Of a stretch of 64,000 nt of DNA, positions 1-31,133 are shown one piece after another; the first letter of the stretch is position 1; every line of letters starts with the position of its first letter. The stretch is from Lepidodermella squamata (Eukaryota > Animalia > Gastrotricha). Both the position numbers and the translations under genes were made by a program. The DNA lies in the NCBI GenBank assembly GCA_047495785.1, contig JBLDXI010000009.1, positions 1,240,001 through 1,304,000 of the forward strand, given 5' to 3'. Below the pieces are notes generated by a model. It was not told the origin of the DNA, ran no database searches, and was given only the letters and a program-made list of their open reading frames with translations.

Positions 1-2171
1 CAGCCTGATAACGAGGTCGAAACTGCTAGCCCTGAAAAAGCCGAACCCGTTAAATCTACGGCTGAATTTTAAGAGATGATTAGAAAAATCGTAAAAAATG
101 AGTCGATTTTCAAAATTGCCGCTTCGTCGATGATCGTACGCGTGGTGCTTGCTCTGTAAACTACTCTCGTGGCTATTTTATGTTAAATCTAGCGGAATAT
201 TTTCGGCGCTTTACCTTTCCCGAATTCGAATGCCAAATCGCTGCGGTAAATAAAATCAGCATAGACACACGCGTATTGTTATTTTCTTGTGATACAGAGG
301 CTTGCTACGTATTATCACCATGAATATATTCGAGAAAAAATCGCACCAGTAGAGAAACGCATGACACAAATTGCGAGGCAAATTTTTCACTATATTCGCT
401 ATCTATACATTACGTTTGTTCATCGGTGGTTGTGCGCTGTTGCCCCTCATCAGTTATTACTGTTATTATTTATTTTAGCACTGTCTTATCAGATTCGACC
501 ACTACCATCATGTTATTGGCTTGCTTCTGATTTCTCCACGTTTTATTTTGAAGCTCTATAATCGCCGTTGCTATTGTAGTTTAATCTATACACGTAATGA
601 TTTTTTCGATCTTTCTCTTGGGCGCGAGCTTGCTTCAATTCGTTTCTTGAATTTATTTGCGATTGTCGAGCATCACCTTTTCTTCTGTTGTCTTCCGAGC
701 CTTCTTTTCTACTCAGTTATTACCACTGATTATATTACGCTATTCTACAATTCTACATCGATTCTTACAATAATAACCTTCGCAATTCTCGGTTATTTTC
801 GTTTTATTCATCATCGATCAGTTGCACAAATTATTCATTCTATAAATTATATGTTTTGCCGCTCCCAAGTCATCGTTTCTAGCTCTTTTTGATTTCGAAG
901 CCGGAACTTCGGAGTTGAAAGAAACGCGCCGCATGTGTAAATAAAAATCAAGTCGTTCCTGTTTCTTCCTTCTTCTTCAGTTTATCTAAACACGGTGAAG
1001 ACAAGTATATAATATCGATTATTGTAATTATTATTGTAACGATAAAATAACAAAGCGTCGTAGCCAGACTGTTAGCTGTTTTTTTTATCAAGTCTAATAG
1101 CTGATTGTTGTGCAATCATGTTGTGTGTCGGTGTTCAAAAAAGAGTAATAACTACTATCTGTGCTTCCTACCTTTTCGACCGGCTAATTGACAGTAATAA
1201 TTATAATTTGATTTCGCAAAGCATCGAACAGTAATTAACCGTACACCTCATGCCTGGAAAAAATGTTGGCTGTAAAACATACTATTGTGCGCGTGTCATC
1301 GCCACGCTTAACAGCTGAAAAAAAATTACTCAATATAATCCGAATTATTACTTATTTGTTGCTGATGCGTCTATCAAAACCAGTCAACTTTCTTTTCTTT
1401 AATTATTTCTGCTCTGCGTTGTTCTATCATTCGGCTTTGTTACAAACAAGTCCGTGGTCTTTGTCTTAAAACTGCTTGACCGATTATTATTATTATTATT
1501 ATAGAAAGAGAAGCCCGAGTTTTTGAGAATTGACAAGAGAAATCGCACGCCCGCAAAAAAAAACTGCGGAAGGTGAAACTTGATAATAATTTAGTAATTA
1601 TTCATTTAAATTGTAGACGGAAACAATAAAATTGCTAAACGATCAAAAACTGGGTGTTTTTTTGGTTGCGTAACTTTGAAAAAGGCGCGTGTTCCGAAGA
1701 TCGCGTGTCACGTTTGAGGCACGCGAATCTCGCAGTGCAAACGATACGAAGGAAAATGTGGCTGCTGAAACATGTTCGCGCGCTCTAAATACAGTGTGTT
1801 TCTTTCGTTTAAGATGATGGTCAACAAAAGCGCGTCAGCTACGTAAAAGGTTGTGTTGTGTCTGGGCCACAATGCTAATTCTGCTGAGGTGAATGAGCGA
1901 CGAACGAGCGCAGAAACTGTTGGCATGTACTCCACTATGTTTTTGCCTTGTCTATAGAAATTTAGCAGCGGCCCAGCTTTGCCTCTAAACTTCAGCTTCT
2001 TTCAGCAGAGAGACGTACTGCTTATGCTGATATTCATAGCTTTGTCCCGCATGTTAGTTATTGTATCACGGTACTCGGTTCGGGAATCTTCGCTGGCGGA
2101 CATTTTAAATTTCAGAAATTCCAATTTACTCACCCTTTTTTATTTTTTTCAGAACAATTTTAGCACACAAA

Positions 2172-3558
2172 ATGGTTACACATACTACGATATTCGGAAT
2201 TTTTGTTGCCTTAATTTTGTTGGGCCAAATGAGCATCAGCGTTGACGCTCATCTCGACACCCAGGAATGCAATTCAGTTTCGTTCCCATGCATGGATGCA
2301 CAAGGTATACCTCGGTGTATACCTAACAGCTGGATCTGTGATGGATTTTCAGGTTTGCCTAATATCTCGAAATCGCCCAGACACAAGCCTTGACCGTTGA
2401 ACTTTTATCAGATTGCTATGACAACATGGACGAAGCGAATTGCTATTACACAGGTTACTATTCTTTTTTCAAATTTTGTTGCCTTTAATTATTCCGAATT
2501 TTTAGAGACCAATTGCACCGCCAATCCGTCAGAAATTTTCCAATGCGGTGCGACAAAATGCTTTTCATCAACTTCGAACATCATTTGCAACGGTATAATC
2601 GACTGCCGTGGCTACAACGGAACTTACGTCAATGCTCCAGTTCGTTCATTTTTTCAACTTTATTGGAAATTTGGCAATCTTACATAATCTGATTTACTCA
2701 ATTCTCTTCGTTCCATCGCTAATTTTCGCAATATTTAATTTGAGATTTAGTATTGAAACATTCCACTTTTTTCTGCAGTATGGTATAGACGAATCGCCCG
2801 AATTTTGCAGCCCCGGCACGACATCGACTACGACGATTTATCCGAGCTCACGTGGCTGGCAACCGGCTACTTATTCGTCATGGGGACCGGTGCTCACCTC
2901 AAGTCTCGGTCCTAAATTACGGCTATCCACGGCACCTTTCTCGCAGATTTCAACGACTGACTCATTCTGGCGTAGCTATTGCAATCGCCAGGTTGCCGTC
3001 AATTAGTGAGTTGAGGATTTTAAGTGCCCTGATTTTATTCAAGTCCCAATTTTTTCCCATAGCTGTCCACGTCGTTGTGAAATTCACGGATTGTGTGCGC
3101 CGTTGCGTGTCAATCCGCCACGGTGGGAGTTGGCAAAGATGGGTGATGAAATGAACCCGCCGGTCGTGGGCCCTCGAGGCAAACTCAGCACCACCCCAGG
3201 TCCGCTAACCACGCCAACAACAACGCCAGCCGCGCCTACTACAACGCAACGGCGACAGCGGTTGTTGAACGAATTGAGTGACGAATTGCTTGAGCGGTTG
3301 TTGCATGACGAGTCGCGGTTGAACGCCGCGGTTGCTGCGCCCACTCCTCCGCCTCAGCTAGCTTTCCCTCGCTCGAATTCGATCGATAATTCGTTGAATA
3401 GTAAAAAACGACGCGATTCGGCAGTCGATCCTGGCGTTATGGCCGACATGATTTACGACTGGTCGGACGACGAATCATCGGACGCGCTCAGATTAACCTC
3501 ATCGCTGGTGCTCATACTCGTCACATTGTTCGCTACGGCAAATAATTTATTGTTTTGA
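2172..3558 (+). CDS. Cell-surface protein with 2 LDL-receptor class A repeats, Thr-rich linkers, a 4-Cys ShK-like motif and a C-terminal hydrophobic (GPI/TM) tail; exons 2172-2352, 2412-2453, 2506-2627, 2779-3005, 3063-3558
   Basis: N-terminal signal peptide; spliced LDLa motifs CIPNSWICDGFS|DCYDNMDEANC and ICNGIIDC...GIDESPEFC; GT-AG introns with compatible phases; hydrophobic C-terminus LVLILVTLFATANNLLF. The donor at 2628 is the least certain. Confidence 0.75.
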
Positions 3559-4626
3559 AGGCCTGCAACAGAAGAGAAACTTTCGAAGCAAATCGGTTTT
3601 CATTTTTCATACATACATATCTCATGTAAATTTGTAAACTTTGAAAGTTGTTAATTTGTGACTTTGTTTATTTCAATCATAATTTAATTTCGAATCGTGA
3701 GAGCTAACACAAATTTGACTGACAACATTGTGCTCAATTTTAAAGAAATAAAAGGAAAAGGCGACACTGAAAAATGCACAATTTCATCACAACATTCTGT
3801 GCAAAATTTTCGAATTGCGGGAGTGAAAAGTCTGAACCATTTTCCCAACTTCAGAGTGAGTCGTGGTTAAACGCGTTTTTTGGCTGAGAAATGAGCTTGA
3901 GAGTCACAGCGGGATATACCCTCGTACACAGCAGGTACGAAGCAAGTTACGAACGGCCGAGGTTCAAGGCTTATCGCTGGCTCACTGATGAAGGCCCGAA
4001 ACTTGGCCGTCGATATTCGCTCAATATTTGCACAGCTTCTGTACTCAGCTTTCGCAGTTAAAATGCCAAAATTATTTTTCTCTCAGACATTGAAATGCCG
4101 TATTACCCAAAATAAGCGAAAGGCTCATAATAATGGGCAGTTTAATAAGGGGCCAAGGTTCGAGCCAATAAAAAAATAAGGCCCTGTTCAAAATCACGTC
4201 CGAAGCAATGGGCTGACATTCCGATCCTATGGAAATACGAGGTGGTTCTTTTATTTCGGGTAATACGGTAGCTTTTTTCTGTGTAGGTAGATTCATGTCT
4301 GCTTTCCTATTACCTATAAACATCCATTTGCACCGCAGTACATCAGCGTAGCGAATTCGCTTGACTCATGGACTTCAGCTTCAGCATCACAAAGCCTAAG
4401 CTAAATTGGTGAACTCAAACCTTTCGCAAAACAATAGCTTGAAGAAAATTGAGGTTTTATTCATTCCAATATTTTATTGCGGATTATCCACAATACTTAT
4501 TTCTTTGTAAGAAAAAAACGAAGAAACAATTCTAGTGAGCCGATGCAGATACGTCTGTACTTTTTTAAAAAAGACGAAAAACGAGGCGAAAATTAATTAG
4601 TCTTCCGATTTCCGATTCGCTAGTAT

Positions 4627-7262
4627 TTAGCCAGCGAACAGCATGTTCAGACCGGAGGGCGCGTCCTCGCCGTTATTGCCGTTCCGTGCGGCTTGTTGAG
4701 CGGCTTTCACCTTGCTGATCAACTGGTTCAGCATTTGCCGCGTCTGATGGTCGAGAGGTATTTGCAGAAACTGCGAAATGAATATCAATTTAAAGTTCAT
4801 CATGATGCTTAAAAATCATATAAAAAATCTTACATCCGCAACATTTTCAGCTGTCACAGATTCGGTGGATTGGATGAACGAAACAACACGCTCATTCATG
4901 TTAGGGTCGGTGCCTAGGTTTTGCGCCGGTCGCCGTTCACCCTGCGGAGGCTGCCCATGCCCATATTGGTGTCTCTGCAAGTCAAAGATTAGTTCATACT
5001 ATGAAATCATGAAAAAGCGCTAACCCGGCCTTGTTGAGGCGGAGCTTGATTACCAGCCGGAGGATAGCCAGGCATTGGCGGGTGTTGAGGCGGGTTGTAA
5101 TGGGTTTGATTTGCGCGCTTTCGCCGCTTCATTTCCATTTCATGGCACTCTTGACCGGTAGGTAGGCTGTAAAGAAAATGAGACAATCAACAATCGGCAA
5201 GACAAATATTTAAGTAATATTACATTGGAGCAGGAATACTGTCTGGGTCGATGTTAGCCAGCCAGGGAGATTCGATGGCTTGTTGCGCTGTTAGCCGAGC
5301 TTTCGGATCGAGGTTCAACAGTTGATCGAGCAAATCTAGGGGCAGTGGCGGGATCAGGGTGCGAAACTCGTCGCGCAACACGCGTTTGTAGATTTTCTTC
5401 GCTTTGAAAGTATGAAAGAGAGGCAGTCGCGCTACATCAGGCCAAACTGCTTGTGTCGGAGTGCCGCAAATCCGGCTGATCAGTTCGAGTTGAGCAAATT
5501 CCTGATTCGCTTGGAACAGCGGTTTCCTGAGGAAAAGTTCACCCAGAATGCAACCGGCACTCCACACATCTACAGCCGGACCGTAATGTTCCTCACCGAG
5601 CAACAGTTCAGGCGGTCTGTACCACAGAGTGATCACCTTATTAGTATACAACCTCTCGTGATCATCGGCGTGGTACAACCGAGCTAGACCGAAATCAGCG
5701 AGCTTCAAGTGACCTCGGCTATTGACTAGAATATTCGAGCACTTCACATCCCGATGTAGGAATCCTTTCGCGTGAACATAGGCAAGTCCGCCCAGTAGTT
5801 GTTTCATTAGCGAGGCTACGTGCAATTCGCTGAAATCAGCTATTCCACTTTCGATAAGGCCCATAAGGTCGTGTTCGCAATACTCGAAGACAAGGTAGAA
5901 CATGGCTGAATCAGGAAGTGGAGAATTATTTGATTCGGTAGGTTCCAATTTATCAGTCACGATTTCTTGTAAGCGAACAATGTTTCGATGATCGAGCTGG
6001 TACAGAATCTTAATTTCTCGCACCGTCGTGATTGGGAAGCCCTCCTTCTCGTTCTCTAAGCGAACACGCTTCAGAGCGACGAGTTCGCCGTTTTCCTTAT
6101 CTCTCGCTTTGTACACCTGGCCGTATGTACCTTCGCCGATTTGAAGTAAAATTTCGAAAGCTTCCGATGTTCTGACGCCCCATTGAACATGACCGGTAGC
6201 TAGATAGCGCTGATTTCGATTGCGACGTAACAGCGACTTGGGATCTGGTGCAGATGAAAGAGTGCCTGTGGAGGACGATAAACGTTTCGATACTTGAGCC
6301 GAATGGCTGCGAGATGAAAGCCCTTCTGTGCTACCGAAAGGTCGCCGCGAATCATTTTCATCACTTTCATCGTCATCACTCTCTCCCACGACCGGCAAAG
6401 GCAGTGAAGAAATGGAATGCATCGATTTACGATGATTGGAATCTGGAGAATTCACAAAAGTTGGTGACTTGATTGTGGGCGAAGCCGGAGAATCGTTTTC
6501 CACCTTGGGCAAAGGAAGGCGTGAAATAGAAGACTTGTGATTACTGGATTCAGATGAACGGTGAGGCCGGTGAGGCGGAGCTGAAGTTGCAGAGCTGCCG
6601 TTTCCTTCGACTTCTTCAGATTTAACTGAATTTTTAGTAGCTTCCTGTTCGGCTTTAAGACGAGCTTTCATCCTAGCTTCTCGTAACGCTCGCATTTCTT
6701 CTTCCAGTAACGTAGAACGCTTGGCAACCGGCGATGAAAACGCTGCAGCCCCTTCACCTGTGGCGGCGGTAGCCAAGGGAGTCGCAGTCGAAGACGATTT
6801 GCTGGGTTTAGGGACAGAATTGCGAACTGGTGATGGCGAAGAATGCTTAGATGGAATCGCAGGCTTAGGTTCACCGTTTGCACTATCAGGGCTAGCAGGA
6901 GGTTCAATTCGCTTGCTATCGCTGCGATGACGTTTATGTCGCCGGCTATCTTGCGACCGATCTCGATGCCTGCTGCGTTTTTTAGACCTCTTGTGCGAAG
7001 AAGATTGCTGCGACGAGTTATCAGCGCTATCATCCATCTTACCGGGAGCATCAGCGCTGTCATTGTTCTCTTGCCGAACAATCATGGACGATGGTTCGTT
7101 CAGCCTCGAGTCGCCGTCTTCATCCGACTGCGTTGTAAAAGCTTCGTCGGGAGACTCGGGTGCATCTTTCGGCCGATCGTGCTTCCTTCTCTTCTGGCCA
7201 TGATGACCATGACGGCTTCTGTGGTGACCTTTAGATCTATCACCGCTGCGATGTCTTCCCAT
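4627..7262 (-). CDS. CDK12: Cyclin-dependent kinase 12/13 (cyclin K-dependent CTD kinase); exons 7262-5224, 5166-5025, 4974-4834, 4770-4627
   Basis: Kinase motifs [70 protein letters not shown]; R/S/H-rich N-terminus; spliced C-terminal extension [18 protein letters not shown] matches the CDK12/13 'DCHE + polybasic' extension; splice phases consistent. Confidence 0.92.
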
Positions 7263-19004: not shown

Positions 19005-20701
19005 ATGGTGTTACCCTGGTATGGTTACGTTGTGGCGGTGATTGGATCTTCCGGCCTGTTTTTCTATCTATACCGGAAATTCGTTTGCCACCGTTATTTC
19101 AAGAGACTTGGCATCCCTGGTCCTGAACCGCATTGGCTATACGGAAATCTGCATCAACTCTTGGTGAAAGACCGCCATCGAGTGGTGCTGGAATGGTCGC
19201 GAAAATACGGCGATTTTTACGGCTACTACGAAGGTCCGACGCCGATCCTAGTCGTTACCAATATCGAAGCCATCGAACAAGTTTGCGTGAAGCAGTTTCC
19301 TATTTTTCAGGGACATCGGGTAATTTCCGAAATTGAATTCAGTATTTTACCAAAATATAATGCAAAATTCAGGTTGTGCCAACCGATCAACCGGATGATA
19401 TCTTGCTCTTCGCCAAAGGCGAAAAATGGAAACGCCTTCGAACCACTGTGAACCCAGCTTTTTCTTCTGGAAAGCTGAAATCCTACGCCCCATCGTTAGC
19501 GAAGAGCCAGCGCGATTTGATGACTCTGTTTTCACAGAAAGCATCGGATGGCAAATCGTTTGAAATAAGAGACACATTTGGGCGACTGACACTAGGTTTG
19601 ATTCTGCTGAGCCTATCGTTTAAAATATTTAAGAGGGACATTTTTGCAAGATGTGATTGCAAGTGTTGGTCTCAATATAAATTTCAATGCGATATTGGAA
19701 CAAGCGACTCCGAATCCGATGCTTCAAAATCTTCGTGAATTTCTGGATAGCAGCACCAAACCAGCCCCGCCTATGGACCTGGCTCGATCTTTGCCGATAT
19801 TTGTTCCTGTTTTAGAGGTACCAGCAGATCTTTTGACTCGAGGAACATCACCAAGAATTTGTTTTAGGTTTTGACAAATACTTTAATATGGACCAAAGCC
19901 GGCTTATTTGGTTCGGTCGCTAAGCTCTTTGAACTTATTGGACAAATCATGGAACAGCGTCGAAGTGATGAATCATCCCAGCGGCGCGTTGACATTCTCC
20001 AGCTAATGCTTGATTCGAAAGAAAACGGGCGGACACGCTTGACTGACGATGAAATCAAGTCCATGTCGTTCATATTTTTCGTGGCTGGTTACGAAACAAC
20101 GGCTACCACCCTGTCCTAGGCGTCGTATCTACTCGCTACGAACCAGGCTGTTCAAGACAAATTGCGGGCGGAAATTTACTCGAAATATCCGAAGGATTTG
20201 CGGGGTGATTGGCAGCCCGAGTACGATGTGGTTATGCATGAGATGCCATACTTAGACTGGGTTTGTAACGAAACTATGCGCATCAATTCATTGGCATTCT
20301 CGATGTTGACTCGTTTCGTCGTTGGCGAGACGCAGCTGTGCGGAATCCCAGTCGGTCGTAACCTGGGCGGTGTTTACCTCGACATGTACAGCGTCCACCG
20401 TAACATCGATCTATGGGGCCCTGTCGACCCGGAAAAGTTCTACCCGGAGCGATTTTCGCCTGAGTATTCGGCTGGTAGACCGAATGCGGCTTTCCTGGCT
20501 TTCGGCCACGGACCGCGGCAATGCGTTGGAATGAGACTCGCCTTATTTTTGATGAAAATGACACTGACGAATTTACTACATCGATTTAGAATGTTGGAGC
20601 CTGACGAAGGTTATCCGGCGGAAGGTTTGCCCTTGAATTCGAGGGAAGGCAGCATTGGCCCTGCAAATGGAGTTCCAATTAAACTAATGTCGCTTTATTG
20701 A
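19005..20701 (+). pseudogene. Cytochrome P450 copy E with a single premature stop (TAG 20117-20119); exons 19005-19319, 19373-19595, 19651-19817, 19868-20701
   Basis: Full-length paralog of F; F has TAT (Tyr) where E has TAG, just after AGYETTATTLS; downstream frame otherwise intact, including FGHGPRQCVG. Confidence 0.85.
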
Positions 20702-20939
20702 TTTCATTAATTCCAATCATATTTTTAGTTGCTGATTACGTAAACTATGGTGATATTTTTCAAGATGAATCGTCGAAAATACAATCTAATATTTTCGAGC
20801 GTAGCTTATTTTCGATTTCTAACCAAAATGAGCCAGAAAACCTAAATAAGACATGAATTAATATGGCCCACGATAGTTATAAGCAGTGGGTCATATTTTT
20901 CCAGGGATCGAAATACGGGTGAAAAAGCGATGATTACAA

Positions 20940-21300
20940 GATGCGAAGTACTTTGGCGGGCCGACGAAACGATATATTTTACCACTTCTGCGAGCAAAGA
21001 GCTTTCCCCAGATCAGCCACGACCACAACTTAGCTCGTGGAGGGGCCATTTTTGCAGCTCCTCAAAGAACTCCTAAGCGAATTGTCAGAGGTAGTTACGA
21101 ATCATTTCCAGCCACACCCAGCCATGAAGAATAAGTTTTTCGCGTGTGACCGTTCTTGTTTCAGAATGAACCGCCGTAGTTCAACCGCCACAGGATGGTG
21201 CAATGCTTAACGCCATAGACCTGTGAAGCAACTGCACCGACATGTTCTTCGTTCTAACCTCAGCGACTGCTCGCGCAAGGCGGTCGTGGTGAGATTTTCC
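20940..21300 (-). mobile_element. Degenerate pogo/Tigger-like transposase N-terminus (pipsqueak HTH followed by CENP-B-type HTH traces)
   Basis: Manual minus-strand translation across a frameshift gives LARAVAEVRTKNMSV/VASQVYGVKHCTILWRL (psq HTH pattern), then stop-interrupted ...CGRG*...FARRSGKI/SFRRP. Confidence 0.55.
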
Positions 21301-22015
21301 AGGCCGAAAAAGGAAAAAGAAGAAATCGCATGCGTAATCTAGGTCATTGCCCTAAATTGCAAAAACGGTGCCTTGATTGTCTTTCGGGCGCGCACAGCCG
21401 GTTATAGCGAGAAACCTAGGTTATTCATCTGTTTTTGAAATTTTCAATTATCCTGCACAACTGTTGGTCGGCACTAAATCCAGCAATATAGACTATCAAT
21501 GCTGGATAGTGCAGAAGGGGACGAAATTGAGAGCAAAAAACGAAACGGCTTCACCGGCACCCATTCGGCTCAAGAGACGGCTATAAAGAACTACACCACC
21601 AGTGCAGGTGTCGAAATAGGCGGTTAAATGACTTCTGCGACCCTTCTCAAATATTTCAATTCTATTTTTGAGAACGAGCTGGACAATGACGTCACACGAC
21701 GTGGTGCTGGATAGCAAATTGCTTGCCCAAGGCAAATTTATCCAGCACTTAACCAACGAGCCAAGCTACGATTACAGAATTTTTATGTGCATCAAACTGC
21801 ATCAAACAATTTTTCTGCATGGGACTTGGGGTGATTTTCAATTGAACTAATATTGAGGCCTACATTATCCTCGTTGTAAAATTTTCTTTCTGGGGTTTTT
21901 TATATTTTTCTTGGGTTATATCTTCAATTCCAGTTCCACGACTTGCTTTGATAATCTACAAGATAATATAATCAAGCAAATTTCGTTTCATTTTTATAGA
22001 AATTAAGATAAAGCC

Positions 22016-23732
22016 ATGGTGTTACCTTGGTATGGTTACGTTGTTGCCGTGATTGGATCTTCCGGCGTGCTTTTCTATCTATACAGAAAATTCGTCTGCC
22101 ACCGATATTTCAAAAGACTTGGCATCCCTGGTCCTGAACCGCATTGGCTGTACGGAAATCTGCATCAAATGTTGGTGAAAGACCGCCATCGAGTTACGCT
22201 GGAATGGTCGCGAAAATACGGCGACTTTTACGGCTACTACGAAGGTCCGACGCCGATTCTGGTCGTTACCAACATCGAAGCCATCGAACAAGTTTGCGTG
22301 AAACAGTTTCCTATTTTTCAGGGACATCGGGTAATTTCCGAAATTGAATTCAATATTTTACCAAAATACTATAAAAATTTAGGTCGTGCCAGTTCAACCG
22401 GATGCTGAACGAGAGCCAGATCACCCTGTGAATCACTTGCTATTCGCACAGGGTGAAAAATGGAAACGCCTTCGAACCACTGTGAACCCAGCTTTTTCTT
22501 CTGGAAAGCTGAAATCCTACGCCCCATCGTTAGCGAAGAGCCAGCGCGATTTGATGACTCTGTTTTCACAAAAAGCATCTGCCGGAAAAACGTTCGACAT
22601 AAAAGACTCTTTTGCGCGACTGACGCTGGGTAAGGTTTTTCTAAAATTGTTCTACCCATTGTAAGAATGGTATTTTTGATAGATGTAATTGCGAGCGTTG
22701 GTTTCAATGTTGATTTCAACGCGATATTGGACCAAGCCACCCCAAATCCGGTGCTTGAAAATCTTCGCGAATTTTTGGATGTAAGCACCCAACCAGCCCC
22801 ACCGATCGACCTAGCCCGAGCGTTACCAATATTCGTTCCATTTTTCAAGGTAACACCAGATCATCCAACTCAATCAAAATGTTAAGGATTTATTTCAGGT
22901 TTTGACCGATTTCTTGATAAGGAACAATGCCGGGTTGTTTGGTTCGATCGGTAAGCTGTTGGAACTTGTTGGGAAAATCATGGAACAGCGTCGAAGTGAC
23001 GAATCATCGCAGCGCCGCGTTGACATTCTCCAGTTAATGCTTGATTCGAAAGAAAACGGGCGGGCACGCTTGACTGACGATGAAATCAAGTCCATGTCGT
23101 TCATATTTTTCGTGGCTGGTTACGAAACAACGGCTACCACCCTGTCCTATGCGTCATATCTTCTCGCTACGAACCAGGCTGTTCAAGACAAAGTGCGGGC
23201 GGAAATTTACTCGAAATACCCGAAAGTTTTGCGGGGTGATTGGCAGCCCGAGTACGATACGGTTATGCATGAGATGCCCTACCTAGACTGGGTCTGTAAC
23301 GAAACCATGCGAATTAATTCACTGGCTTTTGCGATTTTGACTCGTTTCGTCGTTGGCGAGACGCAACTGTGCGGAATCCCAGTCGGTCGCGACCTCGGCG
23401 GTGTTTTCCTTGATATGTACAGCGTCCACAGAAATATCGATCTGTGGGGCCCTGTCGACCCGGAAAAGTTCTATCCGGAGCGATTTTCGCCGGAATATTC
23501 CGCTGGCCGGCCGGATGCGGCTTTCCTCGCTTTCGGCCACGGACCCCGGCAATGCGTTGGAATGCGGCTCGCGCTGTTTGAAATGAAAATGACACTGACG
23601 AATTTACTGCATCGATTCAGAATGTTGGAGCCGGATGAAGGCTACCCGGCTGAAGGTTTGCCGTTGAATTCGAGGGAAGGCGGTATTGGGCCTGCGAATG
23701 GAGTTCCAATCAAACTGGCGTCTTTGTACTGA
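22016..23732 (+). CDS. Cytochrome P450, CYP3 clan (copy F); exons 22016-22330, 22383-22629, 22683-22849, 22899-23732
   Basis: AGYETTA, ETMR, PERF, FGHGPRQCVG; intact spliced frame. Confidence 0.93.
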
Positions 23733-23981
23733 TTCCCTTCTTTCCTAACTAGCTATATCAATAGTCGCTTTCGCGTAAATTATAGTTTGCTATGATAGTA
23801 TCTTTTAAGATGGATGCACGAATTACAACCAGTGAATTGCCTCAGAAAAAATGACACGAAAAACTGTGCTGTGAATGTTGTAGTGGAAGTATTTTGTTCT
23901 TTCTTCGTCACTGTGACAGAACACCTTTATTTTCTTACTATTTATTTGAAAGTTAATGTTATTTAATAAACTTGATTGTAG

Positions 23982-25948
23982 ATGATATTTTCCAAGTTTG
24001 AAATACCTTTCGACTTGAGTCGCGTGGAGTTGTCATTTCAGTTGAAGTGGTTCCATTACGTGGGTGCGGCTATTGTTGGTTCAACTTTCGCGTTCTATTT
24101 GAACCGGAAATGGCGGCAGAGATTGTTCAAGCGAATGGGCATTCCAGGCCCCGAGCCACATTGGCTGTATGGGAATATGCACCAATTGTGGCGCGAAGAT
24201 CGCCACAACGTCATGGTCGAATGGGCGAGGAAATACGGCGAGTTTTACGGTTTTTACGAAGGATCGACGCCGATTTTAGTGACAACAAGCTTGGAAGCGG
24301 CCGAACAGATCTGCGTGAAGCAGTTCTCCAGTTTTCAAGGTCACAGGGTAAGTTCTTTCGCGATAGCCTTGTTTTGTTCCTAAAGTAACATTTTCCATTT
24401 AAAAATGTGAAGCTTCTGCCGACGCAGCCTGATCCTGATGCCGATCCAGACTCTCCGGTGAGCCATTTACTGTTCGCTCAGGGCGAGCGTTGGAAACGGT
24501 TCGATTTGTTCTAAAGTTGGACTTGATTATTTCTAATTTTATTCATTTCAGACTTCGAACCACCGTGAACCCCGCTTTTTCATCTGGGAAACTGAAATCT
24601 TACGCTCAAGCGATGAATGAAATCCAAGAAGAGTTTCTGGTTCTGCTGTCGCAAGAAGCCAGGTGTGGAATAACCTGTTGAAGAGACATTACTTGATATC
24701 ATTTCATTCCAGGGCGGGAGAACCATTCAATATTCATAACTCGTTTCAATTACTGACCCTGGACGTTATCGGATCGTTGGGGCTGGGAATCGATTTTCAG
24801 GCGATTAAAACAAGAGGCGAGGGAAACCTTTTCCTTAGAAATCTTCGAAAATTCCTGGATGCAACTGTCAATCCTGCTCCGCCTCTGGATCTTGTTAGAA
24901 TTGTCCCTGAATTAACTCCAGTCATGAAGGTAAAATTAGTTATGAATTTAATGAATTTAATGAATTAGACTCTGTTTAGGCTCTTGCCAATTGGCAACTC
25001 AAAAGCATGACAGGCTTTTTCGGGGTTATCGGCGAAATGCTAGGGATGGTTGGAAAAATCATTGAAAATCGGAAATCTGACGACAAGTTCCGCCGACAAG
25101 ATCTTTTGCAATTGCTAATTGACGCTAAACAAATGAGTGACAACGAGCTAAAGGCAATGGCACTACTGTTTGTTTTCGCCGGCTATGATACAACGAGTAA
25201 TACCCTCGGCTTTATGGCCCATTGTTTAGCCGCTAATCCAAAAGTTCAAGAAAAGCTACGGGCGGAAATTTATTCGCATTACCCGGCGGGGGTAGATGCT
25301 ACGCCTGACTATGATGTCGTCATGAATCAAATGCCTTACCTCGATGCGTGCTGCCGCGAAACCATGCGCTTGTACCCGGTTGTTTACAGTTTCGTTAATC
25401 GGTTTGTCGTTGATAATACGACGCTGTGCGGAATTCCTGTTTCGCCGAAACTCGGCAGCGTTCTTGTTGACATGTGTGCCATTCATCAAAATGTCGATTT
25501 ATGGGGCCCGATTGACCCGAAAATTTTCCACCCCGAGCGATTTCTAGACGATAACGCTGCCAATCGACCAGATATCGCGTTTTTAGCCTTCGGTTACGGG
25601 CCTCGGCAATGTGTTGGTGAGTTGTGCGAAAAAATCGATCCAATTTTTTTTTAAGGAGGACGATTATGAAAATTTTCGAGATTACCAGGGTTTTTCGAAT
25701 TTGGAGTTTTCAAATTAATTTGGGCTTCAAATTAATTTATTAAAATTGAATTCGATTTCGGAATTGATTTAATCGATATAGGAATGCGGCTCGCTTTGTA
25801 TGAAATGAAGCTGACTATTACGAACTTGGTTCGGCAATATTTTATCGAGTTACCCAATGATCAATCGAACAGCTTTGTGGTGGCTTCTCGCGAAGGCGCT
25901 ATGGTTCCGAAAAACGGCGTTTTTGTCCAGTTGAAAGCCGTAGATTAA
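23982..25948 (+). CDS. Cytochrome P450, CYP3 clan (copy G); exons 23982-24347, 24413-24498, 24552-24662, 24713-24929, 24980-25616, 25782-25948
   Basis: AGYDTTS, ETMR, PERF, and FGYGPRQCV|GMRLALYEMK joined across a phase-1 intron; all phases consistent. Confidence 0.92.
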
Positions 25949-28435: not shown

Positions 28436-28447
28436 ATTGAAAAATTA

Positions 28448-29197
28448 CCGTAACGCTGGGTAATTTTGGACAGGCTAAATTTGGACACTACACTTTATCA
28501 GCTAAATTGTGCTCGATCAGGAAGGTGAATAAAAATTTCGGTAAAAATCCTCAGATTCCTTGAGAGTTGGGCTTTCCAACGGTACCAAATACGAGGTATA
28601 ATGGAAGTTACCTGTCTTCTACAAAAATTGAAAAGGTAGGATGTCTCTAAACGTCGATTTGGGACCCCCCTAATTCCCAGTCAATCCGAATATATCTCGA
28701 CTTGAAATTTTTACCAGTGGCAACTGACACCATGAACTCTCGACTGGCAAAAAAATAATTGACCTTTGTCGACGGGAATTCGGTACAGGTGACCTCAAAG
28801 TTTAGGCCACACGTGGGGCAATTTTGGACATGATAAATGCGTTGAGAGAAAAATAGCGGGAAAAAAATTCGAATCGAGTTTGGATGACGTCATCAGTTTC
28901 TTGGCACCATGTGCGCATTTTTTTCGGAATTTCAAGAAAAGTGTCAAGTTCTGCACGCATTCCGACAATTATGAATATGCTAATGAAGTGTCCAAATTTA
29001 CCCCATAAGTGTCCAAATTTAGCCTAACCACGCACAATTTTTATAAAATCAAGGTAAAATGAGAAAATTACCAAATTTTGCCCAGAGATCGGAAGTGGTC
29101 CCCCCCTCATGCTATGAAATTTTCACATTTGTATAATTTTTTCCTGATTTTCAAGAGCTGAAAACCATGTTTTTGTCCAAAATAACCCCCATTACGG
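28448..29197. mobile_element. Non-autonomous Tc1/mariner-superfamily (pogo/Tc2-like) element, ~750 bp
   Basis: TA|ccgtaacgctgggtaattttggaca ... tgtccaaaataacccccattacgg|TA: imperfect ~24-bp TIRs with TA on both sides; internal aa(t)tttggaca / tgtccaaatt subrepeats; no ORF. Confidence 0.8.
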
Positions 29198-29426
29198 TAA
29201 GGTCTGCCAACCAAAAACGTTCAAGTTTAAATAATGCTGATGATAATTATTGAATAAATGTCCGAAACGAATGCGCATGTCCGAAATTTAATCTAAAAGG
29301 TCACGCTTCTCGCTTTTGTCCTAATCAGCGCTGCGTTTTTAATCGGTCTCAGGCCTAAACGTGCGTGTCCTGATACAACAGCCAGATCATGGCTGAGTGG
29401 CCATGTTTGGCGCCAAAACCGCGAGT

Positions 29427-29460
29427 TATAAACGCCCCGTCGTCGACGAAATATTCATCA
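29427..29460 (+). promoter_or_regulatory. TATA box plus initiator-like site for the hevein-expansin gene
   Basis: TATAAA at 29427-29432, TCA at 29455-29457 (28 nt after the TATA start), ATG at 29517; AATAAA at 30321 after the stop. Confidence 0.5.
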
Positions 29461-29516
29461 CATCGACTTGCATCGCTCTCTTTTCTAACTCAGCTTTCAG
29501 CCGCCGATAACTCAAC

Positions 29517-30251
29517 ATGTCTCGCTCGATATTTGTTCTGCTCGCCATTACCGCTGCCGTTTGCGCTCTCGATGCCGGCTACACGACGAAGCCGCCTGGT
29601 TCGTGCAAAACCGACGAAGACTGTACCTCGAGAAAGGCAGGAGTGTGCTGCTCGAAATGGGGCTTCTGCGGCGATAGCTTCTCGTATTGCAAGGGGGACA
29701 AATCCACCGCCCTGCCTACCAAGCAGCCCTCAACCAAGGCAGCTGCTTCAACAACGAAAGCCGCCACGACTTCAACCACGACAACCACGACAGCCACCTC
29801 AACTACCACTACGCAGCTTTCCAGCACCACCACTTCCACCACTGGGTACGTAATGTGTATTTCCAATTGATTTATCTTACTGGATCTTCATTTTAGGGAA
29901 GGCGACAGCGCTATTCCGATGAATCAGGTTTTCGCTACCAACTTCACCTACTACACGGCTAACGGCTACAGCGCCTGCGGTCCGATGGTCAACGCTTCGG
30001 CCGAGCTTGTTGCCGCCGTCAGCTCGCAGTGGTTCACCCAGCAAAACCCGAATCTCGACGCTGTTTGCCACGGCATCTGCGTTACCGTTACCTACCAGAA
30101 CGCATCGCTCACGCTGCCGATCAAGGAGAAGTGCGGTTCGTGCTCCAAGTTCAACCTGCAACTGTCGGAGCCAGCTTTCATTCAGATCGCTAGCGGCAGC
30201 CACGACATCGGCCACGTCAGCGACGCCGAGTTCAGCTTTGTTGCTTGCTAA
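29517..30251 (+). CDS. Secreted protein: signal peptide + hevein/CBM18 chitin-binding domain + Thr-rich linker + expansin-like/RlpA double-psi beta-barrel domain; exons 29517-29845, 29897-30251
   Basis: CKTDEDCTSRKAGVCCSKWGFCGDSFSYC (hevein core CCSxxGxCGxxxxYC); FTYY...GYSACG...LVAAVS..WF..NPNLDAVC..CVTVTY...KEKCGSC...LQLSEPAF (DPBB/expansin-like pattern); 51-nt phase-2 GT-AG intron joins the two ORFs in frame. Confidence 0.88.
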
Positions 30252-30449
30252 AAACTTATGAAATTTTCGAACTTCATTTTCCCCTCTTGATTACGTCTAA
30301 TACGGCGATTGTCATAGGCCAATAAAACTTAACATTGTTTCATCAGCGCTTCATTGTTGAAAGGTTACTCACTCATCTGCTTATAAGGCGAGAAAATTCG
30401 GGTTAAATCAACAAATCTTACTCATTACTAGTAAATAAAAAGTATAGAT

Positions 30450-30969
30450 ATGAGCTGTTTGCTTCGATTCGCTGTTTTTGCCTTGATTTTTGCGGCTTGC
30501 TCAGCCGCGGTTTGGCGTGATTGCGGCACTAACTACGGCAAAGTTGTTTCAGTCCACCTGCCAAGCTGTGGTAATCGTACTCGGTGCCGGTTGACCCGTA
30601 ATGAAACTGAGACGATCGAGGTCAAATTTATTCCAGGTAATTACGCATTTCGCTCAAATGTTCTGGTCTTATGCTTATTTTTTTGCAGGTGCTCAAGTTG
30701 CCAAAGTTCACACTATTGTCGTAGGCATTCTTGGAAACGTTCCCACCCCGTTTCCGCTACCTGACGCCAACGCGTGTAGCGACCCGGAAGTGCTGAAATG
30801 TCCGGTTGAGGGTGGCAAGGTGACAACGTATCGAAACAGCTTCTACGTCTCACCTGCATATCCGAAGCTTTCTCTCACCGTTAAATGGATGCTGGTCGAC
30901 TCTGAAAACTGGAACCGCCGCCTCGTATGCGTTATGACACCCATTCGTATCGGCGACAAAACTGACTAA
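30450..30969 (+). CDS. NPC2: NPC2 / ML-domain sterol- and lipid-binding protein; exons 30450-30636, 30689-30969
   Basis: Signal peptide, WRDCG, six Cys in ML-domain spacing, GNVPTPFPLPDANAC, CPV, YP.L.LTVKWML...VC. Confidence 0.88.
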
Positions 30970-31133
30970 AGACTTACAAGCTATTTATTTCTTCAACTAA
31001 TAAAATTGAAAAAATTTCGCGGATTAATAAAGCTTAACATTGAGGTAGAAAAGGTTAATCACGGGTTGTTGGGGAATTATCATAGCAGAAGCTGATAGAT
31101 TTTCGCTAAAATTGGAAATTCTAACAAGACACT

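Follow-up and report, generated by a model that had tools for sequence, protein, structure and literature searches.

SPI, a protease inhibitor of Streptomyces mobaraensis (PDB 5NTB; NF041659), acts at nanomolar levels on papain, gingipains and trypsin, antagonizes bacterial growth and is fixed to the Streptomyces surface layer by transglutaminase (PMC4757070). [quoted passage not shown] Fungal effectors and loosenins such as RsRlpA, Pst-DPBB and PcaLOOL12 are likewise small, secreted, single DPBB domains, and RsRlpA inhibits a papain-type protease (PMC7662947). Plant class I PR-4 (prohevein) proteins carry, in order, a signal peptide, a hevein domain and a DPBB-superfamily domain. Here we analyse a two-exon gene at positions 29517–30251 (+) of a 64,000-nucleotide stretch (the window) of contig JBLDXI010000009.1 of the gastrotrich Lepidodermella squamata. 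Read from the sequence, the gene encodes 227 amino acids in which a hevein-type module precedes an SPI-type barrel, a domain pairing that is new to this family, for which movement between microbes and animals was already suspected. On balance, we favour the view that the product is a secreted, chitin-docked SPI-type barrel protein whose barrel goes back to an old horizontal acquisition.

The C-terminal domain is an SPI-type barrel

The hevein part and the barrel were searched separately. The barrel (29898–30248, +; residues 111–227, 117 amino acids) is an SPI-type DPBB with six cysteines. The NCBIfam profile Papain_Inhib (NF041659) matched it at E = 4.4e-32 over profile positions 27–126 of 130, and SPI itself (5NTB) matched at E = 4.8e-23, with domain residues 6–107 aligned to SPI residues 2–101 at about 40% identity over roughly 100 residues; the Pfam DPBB_1 match was weak (E = 3e-3). 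Like SPI, the barrel is a single-domain DPBB with two core disulfides, and the two proteins have the motifs NPNxD, KC..C and LS..AF in common. The core cysteines (in the motifs ACG, DPxC, KC and xC; domain positions C27, C57, C79 and C82) fall in columns that are at least 90% conserved. An AlphaFold model built from alignment A2, with a predicted local distance difference test (pLDDT) score of 92.9, was compared with known folds in Foldseek. It matched 5NTB with template-modelling (TM) scores of 0.90/0.95 and a root-mean-square deviation of 1.0 Å over 110 residues, and other folds less closely: 0.64–0.70 for expansin D1, 0.68/0.75 for the loosenin PcaLOOL12, 0.45 for barwin and 0.59 for a papaya barwin-like protein. 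In the ESM Atlas, the nearest cluster was an actinobacterial 'Cysteine/serine endopeptidase inhibitor' (TM 0.96). The closest characterized relative of the barrel is SPI, a protease inhibitor, and not an expansin. In sequence, the fungal DPBB effectors and loosenins stand further off; they have no carbohydrate-binding module of family 18 (CBM18) and split from the SPI-like group in trees with support of 100/99.

The window protein also has features that SPI lacks: it is eukaryotic, its gene has an intron, a hevein module and mucin linker stand before the barrel, and the barrel carries three N-glycosylation sequons (N125, N142 and N178) and an extra disulfide. The latter would join a third cysteine pair, one in the central strand and one at the C-terminus (putatively Cys171–Cys227); the window protein shares this pair with 19 of 20 eukaryote-group rows and with 1 of 44 Actinomycetota-group rows. 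A further difference is in the HxDLS motif, where Gln198 (30159–30161) replaces the conserved groove Asp, giving FNLQLS in place of HIDLS in SPI and HLDLF in 7WVR. The column holds Asp in 124 of the 157 family domains. The loss is matched in some nematode paralogues, such as Steinernema P0076, and in P0001–P0003, the best-scoring metatranscriptome relatives, which are tandem double barrels. The Asp of the H-x-D-L-S motif aligns with Asp82 of BsEXLX1, a residue critical for the function of that protein (PMC11869483).

By Pfam, no Expansin_C or D2 (CBM63) domain was found in the protein, which ends at the C-terminal Cys of the barrel, and the profile expansin_EXLX1 (NF041144) matched at E = 4.8e-6 over positions 4–87 of 194. 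We rejected an expansin in the strict sense on the missing D2, the Gln at position 198 and the weak NF041144 match. The sequence-only reading of this DNA had called the domain an expansin/RlpA-like DPBB; the DPBB assignment, and its place in the family of nematode EXPB, stood, and the expansin likeness gave way to SPI as the nearest characterized relative and to the lost groove Asp.

Expansin-like function is a separate matter. The barrel could loosen chitin fibres non-hydrolytically, in fungal feeding or in remodelling of the animal's own chitin, with the hevein module in the part that CBM2 plays in plant-parasitic nematode expansins. Nematode expansin B belongs to the same family, as does Gr-EXP1 with its wall-extension activity (PMC5093861); homologues are fused to glycoside hydrolase family 18 (GH18) chitinases, CBM5/12 and LysM; the conserved Thr of the TYY motif is retained; and, according to the part of PMC11869483 that cites Monschein 2023, loosenins affect chitin networks. 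Against this, the groove Asp that is essential in BsEXLX1 (PMC11869483) is a Gln here, the expansin D2/CBM63 domain is absent, the fold is much nearer to SPI than to any expansin D1, and the sequon N125-F-T overlaps the conserved groove Thr. We therefore regard a chitin-directed expansin or loosenin as conceivable but rather unlikely.

A hevein-type module and a mucin-like linker precede the barrel

Exon 1 (29517–29845, +) begins with the ATG at 29517 and its 3' end abuts GTACGT; exon 2 (29897–30251, +) continues in phase 2 and closes with a TAA stop right after the Cys that is the usual C-terminus of the barrel family. They are separated by a 51-nt GT–AG spliceosomal intron (29846–29896, +; GTACGT...TTTTAG; phase 2), which holds an in-frame TGA at 29868 and lies exactly at the boundary between linker and DPBB. 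The two exons join across this intron in the sequence, as the sequence-only reading of a single-intron gene had it. Splicing and expression of the gene are predicted from these features.

The first 17 residues (29517–29567, +; MSRSIFVLLAITAAVCA) look, by eye, like a signal peptide, with a hydrophobic core, Val at −3, Ala at −1 and a likely cleavage site between VCA and LD. Residues 30–58 (29604–29690, +) form a 6-Cys hevein-type, CBM18-like module with the framework C30-x5-C36-x7-C44C45-x5-C51-x6-C58 and the motif CCSKWGFCGDSFSYC. Pfam Chitin_bind_1 matched it at E = 4.3e-4 (20.9 bits) over profile positions 8–31 of 38, a partial match that suggests a truncated 6-Cys form. In a phmmer search of the PDB, the best matches were nearly all of hevein type (Ac-AMP2 at E = 0.003, cQ2, hevein, pokeweed lectins and WGA); the leaders Ac-AMP2, cQ2 and hevein, at E values of 0.003–0.03, aligned over a CCS-W-G-F-CG-Y-C motif. 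Alignment of CCSKWGFCGDSFSYC to these three was gap-free and placed Ser, Trp, Phe and Tyr on known sugar-binding positions; the core motif CCS-x-(W/F/Y)-G-(W/F/Y)-CG-x4-YC, with Ser and three aromatics, is present in the module. A word-index search with the hevein part found no match among 5.8 billion clusters. A single-sequence model reached a pLDDT of 69, and squash knottins fitted part of it as well as hevein-type peptides did. With moderate statistical support, the module appears to be a truncated 6-Cys hevein-type domain of the Ac-AMP2 kind.

The linker (29694–29845, +; residues 60–110) contains 23 Thr and 8 Ser in 51 residues (61% Thr plus Ser) and is probably O-glycosylated. The signal peptide, the 6-Cys hevein domain with intact sugar-binding positions and the mucin-like Thr linker had all been named in the sequence-only reading, and each was borne out here: the first on a by-eye judgement of residues 1–17, the second on the ungapped alignment to Ac-AMP2, cQ2 and hevein with a Pfam score below cut-off, and the third on its composition. 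Hevein-like domains also occur in animals: amphioxus PGRP3 has one with demonstrated chitin binding, which aids microbial binding (PMC4610682). The hevein module of the window protein therefore need not be foreign and could be the animal's own.

The barrel belongs to the nematode expansin-like family

When 1.84 billion representatives were searched exhaustively with HMMER, 263 matched at E ≤ 1e-3, none above 51% identity. This ceiling, despite well-represented nematode proteomes, fits a poorly sampled phylum. A word-index search with the barrel found no close relative of 64–205 amino acids among 5.8 billion clusters, and a metagenome scan with the barrel found no relative. The scan of prokaryotes, made with alignment A3 (the closer set), covered 185,579 species genomes and returned 186 loci; the 80 best were all from Actinomycetota. 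The actinomycetotal relatives include Amycolatopsis, Kitasatospora and Streptomyces, and one relative came from a myxobacterium.

All eukaryotic relatives that could be traced to a name are proteins of Tylenchina nematodes, among them those of Steinernema glaseri, S. hermaphroditum, Panagrolaimus species, Meloidogyne enterolobii, Panagrellus redivivus and Aphelenchoides bicaudatus, together with one annotated 'papain inhibitor' in Ditylenchus destructor and one annotated 'expansin B' in Aphelenchoides avenae. At locus L084 (8600–16200 of AZBU02000008.1, an accession that we take to be Steinernema carpocapsae), at least five SPI-type barrel genes, each of two exons and some without the groove Asp, stand in tandem beside two trypsin-family genes. 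The best PDB match of the A. avenae 'expansin B' is SPI (1.5e-17), and this protein and seven other members scored 1e-16 to 1e-56 against Papain_Inhib, compared with 1e-5 to 1e-12 against expansin_EXLX1. These scores lead us to conclude that the nematode expansin-like family is the SPI family. In the searchable literature, we found no paper that links the two. Papain_Inhib outscored EXLX1 by 10–40 orders of magnitude for nematode expansin-like proteins including P0103, P0055 and P0158, and Panagrellus P0158 passes the Papain_Inhib equivalog cut-off.

The window barrel is a member of this known family of nematode expansin-like proteins, for which the literature gives a link to Actinobacteria. 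Kinship with nematode EXPB had been proposed in the sequence-only reading and is upheld: the family is the same, patchy in animals and common to Actinomycetota. Gr-EXP1/EXPB, Bx-EXPB1, HaEXPB2 and the A. avenae 'expansin B' have the same type of barrel, commonly with the third disulfide, and, like the window protein, they are secretory proteins that often combine a carbohydrate-binding module at the N-terminus with a linker. The differences lie in the targeting module, which is CBM18 (chitin) in the window protein and CBM2 (cellulose) in the nematode proteins; in sequence, with the window barrel at most 47% identical to any nematode member; and in lifestyle, since the host of the window gene is apparently not a plant parasite, unlike the plant-parasitic nematodes.

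Chitin-directed modules recur in the family

Chitin association recurs across the barrel family. Among 149 homologues, we counted additional CBM5/12 modules in 9, LysM in 6, Chitin_bind_1 in 3, GH18 in 2 and CBM2/CBM49 in 1. The actinobacterial barrels P0018, P0022, P0005, P0016, P0020, P0035, P0038 and P0043 are fused to GH18 chitinase-like domains or CBM5/12, some with fn3. These actinobacterial fusions raise the question of whether 'papain inhibitor' describes the primary function of the bacterial family. The chitin targeting proposed in the sequence-only reading agrees both with the CBM18 motif and with the chitin modules that recur on homologues, and is on these grounds a plausible property of the window protein.

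One relative has the layout of the window protein. P0032, a 177-amino-acid metatranscriptome protein (JGI 3300030632, locus L001) encoded on an mRNA-like contig with untranslated regions and an AATAAA signal, consists of a signal peptide, a 6-Cys hevein module, a flexible Gly/Ser linker and an SPI-type barrel, and scores above the Pfam gathering thresholds of both Chitin_bind_1 and DPBB_1. The idea that the hevein–DPBB architecture is unique falls with this protein. Its barrel shares 60–62% identity with proteins of Aphelenchoides and Panagrellus, which points to a nematode as the probable source of P0032, and only 36% with the window barrel. P0032 differs from the window protein in its linker (Gly/Ser rather than Thr) and in the groove, where it keeps the Asp (HIDLS). 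It is not the sister of the window protein in trees, and the two hevein–barrel fusions may accordingly be independent; the hevein fusion arose or persisted at least twice in the family. P0169, a metatranscriptome GH19 chitinase, is 73% identical to the hevein and linker part of P0032, which suggests that the hevein module was exchanged between a chitinase gene and a barrel gene in one organism.

The order of domains in the window protein is also that of plant class I PR-4 proteins, from which it differs in the family of its barrel (that of PR-4 is barwin), in a hevein module with 6 rather than 8 Cys and in its long mucin linker. The resemblance is convergence of architecture and not homology of the whole protein. 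A barwin/PR-4 homologue was rejected, as no Pfam Barwin (PF00967) match was found at E ≤ 1 and TM scores were 0.45–0.59. PR-4 convergence, as the sequence-only reading had proposed, thus holds for architecture only, given a TM score of 0.90 for SPI. We considered whether the protein might nevertheless be a PR-4-like antimicrobial or immune lectin, in which the hevein module would recognize microbes with chitin or N-acetylglucosamine, harming or agglutinating them or serving pattern recognition, and the barrel would be an effector or oligomerization part. Several observations point this way: in sequence, the module comes closest to 6-Cys hevein peptides such as Ac-AMP2, the hevein-like domain of amphioxus PGRP3 aids microbial binding (PMC4610682), SPI antagonizes bacterial growth (PMC4757070), a plant hevein–barwin cluster is nearest to the P0032 architecture by sequence features, and the gene adjoins an ML-domain gene. 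However, the barrel is not barwin by either fold or Pfam, so the activities of PR-4 are not transferable to it, and we consider a lectin of this kind improbable.

The barrel is probably part of a eukaryotic branch

Three trees, of 157, 100 and 66 domains, placed the window barrel amid nematode and unidentified eukaryotic sequences. In the careful 66-row tree, Actinomycetota and LysM-bearing, probably fungal, rows formed a clade (support 97/92) that excludes the window, and the tree outside this clade was a polytomy. The window gene appears to belong to the eukaryotic branch of the barrel family. We rejected a recent bacterial insertion in view of the eukaryote-type third disulfide and the position of the window outside the 97/92 clade.

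The Actinomycetota clade is short-branched, contains the LysM-bearing probable fungal proteins and is set within a polytomy of long eukaryotic branches. From this tree shape it follows that transfer from actinobacteria to nematodes, the usual assumption, is not demonstrated by these data. The family as a whole is patchy, being present in Actinomycetota, a myxobacterium, LysM-bearing probable fungi, Tylenchina nematodes and this animal, and its presence in the animal would be best explained by an old horizontal acquisition, with direction and age inferred. Fusion with the hevein exon probably took place within animal genomes, through shuffling of exons across the phase-2 intron. Of the foreign-module origin put forward in the sequence-only reading, the patchy family shared with Actinomycetota remains; a recent transfer does not, the hevein module may be native, and donor and direction were not separated in the trees.

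The gene is integrated in the animal genome

The focal gene is a genuine gene of the animal itself, physically integrated and of host-type structure. Its neighbours are of animal type (p450, rhodopsin-type 7tm_1 G-protein-coupled receptor (GPCR), ML-domain and P4-ATPase genes), and lie on both sides of it, which agrees with the sequence-only reading of a gene among animal genes. The GPCR gene ends 1.1 kb upstream. The ML-domain (MD-2/NPC2-like) gene (30450–30972, +) begins 199 nt past the focal stop codon on the same strand and contains a 52-nt GT–AG intron (30638–30689) of one size class with the 51-nt focal intron. The spacing between the two genes is operon-like. Around the focal gene, a TATAAA box-like motif (29427–29432, +), about 85 nt 5' of the ATG, is a candidate core promoter element; CTTTCAG (29494–29500, +), 17 nt 5' of the ATG, is a candidate 3' splice (trans-splice) acceptor; and an AATAAA poly(A) signal (30322–30327, +) lies about 70 nt 3' of the stop codon. 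Scans for bacterial-type promoters and terminators stayed at chance level, an Rfam search of the window gave no match, and no paralogue of the hevein or barrel domain was found within the 64-kb window. Elsewhere in the window, at least three CYP3-like cytochrome P450 (CYP) genes lie in tandem at 20162–25654 (+), two near-identical copies of which have their C-terminal exons at 20162–20701 and 22902–23732.

Between the GPCR gene and the focal gene, about 320 bp upstream of the latter, lies a non-coding 756-bp repeat (28445–29200; strand unassigned) with 22-nt inverted arms at 28445–28466 and 29179–29200. In the sequencing run X1, the repeat reached a depth of 1600–4700 against about 100, that is, 16–47 times single copy, and one X1 contig joins 28445 to 29198, as an empty site would. 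It looks like a polymorphic insertion resembling a miniature inverted-repeat transposable element, which belongs to the host genome context and is not part of the gene. Run X1 behaves as DNA: it covers intergenic DNA and also the intron, whose depth equals that of the exons. Its sequence departs from the window at 1–3% of positions, so the run is not simply the assembly's own reads. Depth in X1 was 88–93 over the focal gene and 60–102 over flanking genes. Differences amounted to 1 in 243 nt in exon 2 and to 13–19 per 419–561 nt in the upstream flank, and the low divergence of exon 2 is weak evidence of constraint. Two further runs contain diverged copies of the 3' part of the gene.

These data bear on whether the locus is an artefact, be it contaminant DNA, a chimera from multiple displacement amplification (MDA) that was fused to an animal contig, or a dead relic with no transcription. 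The published L. squamata assembly (122 Mb, 157 contigs, 43% GC) was made from MDA DNA of one specimen, and 370 non-metazoan contigs were removed from it (PMC11660948); if the window comes from that assembly, such DNA can yield chimeric reads. The window has a GC content of 43–44%. The GC content at third codon positions (GC3) of the focal gene, 0.71 overall and 0.76 in exon 2 alone, is above that of 13 neighbouring coding stretches (0.46–0.61; 0.46–0.57 in CYP genes and 0.50–0.61 in the others), as the sequence-only reading had noted of codons more often C/G-ending than those of the CYP neighbours, and the locus appears in no RNA run. Against an artefact stand the intron of host size class, the poly(A) signal and a host repeat family immediately upstream; the animal genes 1.1 kb upstream and 199 nt downstream; the second, non-identical DNA data set with equal depth over gene and flanks, along with the two runs holding diverged 3' copies; and an intact open reading frame in which every family Cys is kept. 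The eukaryote-type disulfide speaks further against a bacterial contaminant. Contamination or misassembly is very unlikely, and an artefact of any of these kinds would, in our judgement, be highly surprising.

Discussion

In the mechanism that we propose, the N-terminal 6-Cys hevein module would dock the secreted protein on chitin, the mucin-type glycosylated linker of about 50 residues would act as a spacer that holds the barrel out, and the barrel would act non-hydrolytically at the chitin-bearing surface, either as an SPI-like inhibitor or shield against cysteine and serine proteases or as a plain binder. This surface might belong to the animal, as its own chitinous matrix or its eggs, or to fungal or microbial material that it has ingested. 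SPI and the window protein would then both be secreted and surface-fixed, SPI by transglutaminase and the window protein presumably by CBM18. We tentatively prefer this binder or protease-inhibitor role to chitin loosening and to a lectin-like role because the Asp needed for loosening is lost while fold and disulfides are kept. Secretion, chitin binding and inhibitor activity are predictions for the window protein, drawn from its sequence and its relatives; inhibition of such proteases is known for SPI and RsRlpA only (PMC4757070; PMC7662947).

Several results weigh against this account. The barrel scored 110.8 bits against Papain_Inhib, for which the equivalog cut-off is 150, and is therefore a family-level relative of NF041659 and not an equivalog. 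The Chitin_bind_1 score of the hevein module lies under the gathering cut-off of 27.8 bits, and the top ten Foldseek matches of its model, all hevein-type peptides, were non-significant (E ≥ 0.16). Fusions of homologues to chitinases and carbohydrate-binding modules would be expected of a carbohydrate-active helper module rather than of an inhibitor, and Gr-EXP1, of the same family, has wall-extension activity (PMC5093861). As for origin, the trees were poorly resolved, separating neither the sister group of the window nor the direction of transfer, and a placement of the window as sister to the Actinomycetota clade was not rejected in the approximately unbiased test (p = 0.6). Finally, no RNA was found for the locus, as both searches of sequencing runs returned DNA-type runs only.

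A more speculative extension is that the gene is one half of a chitin-anchored protease/inhibitor system, in which enzyme and inhibitor meet on one chitin matrix. We think this improbable; if it were true, nematode 'expansin-like' proteins would be, at least in part, surface-docked protease inhibitors and not wall looseners.

Whatever the activity of the barrel, the gene adds a new animal lineage to the SPI/nematode expansin-like barrel family, and a module that targets chitin instead of cellulose. Coupling of this barrel to modules that bind or cut chitin is a repeated pattern in Actinomycetota, probable fungi and animals, and the nematode "expansins" are far closer, in sequence and fold, to a bacterial protease inhibitor than to true expansins. 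The gene also provides a documented case for the debate on gene transfer into small invertebrates. Whether such barrels inhibit proteases or loosen walls bears on how the plant-parasitic nematode effectors of this family are to be read.

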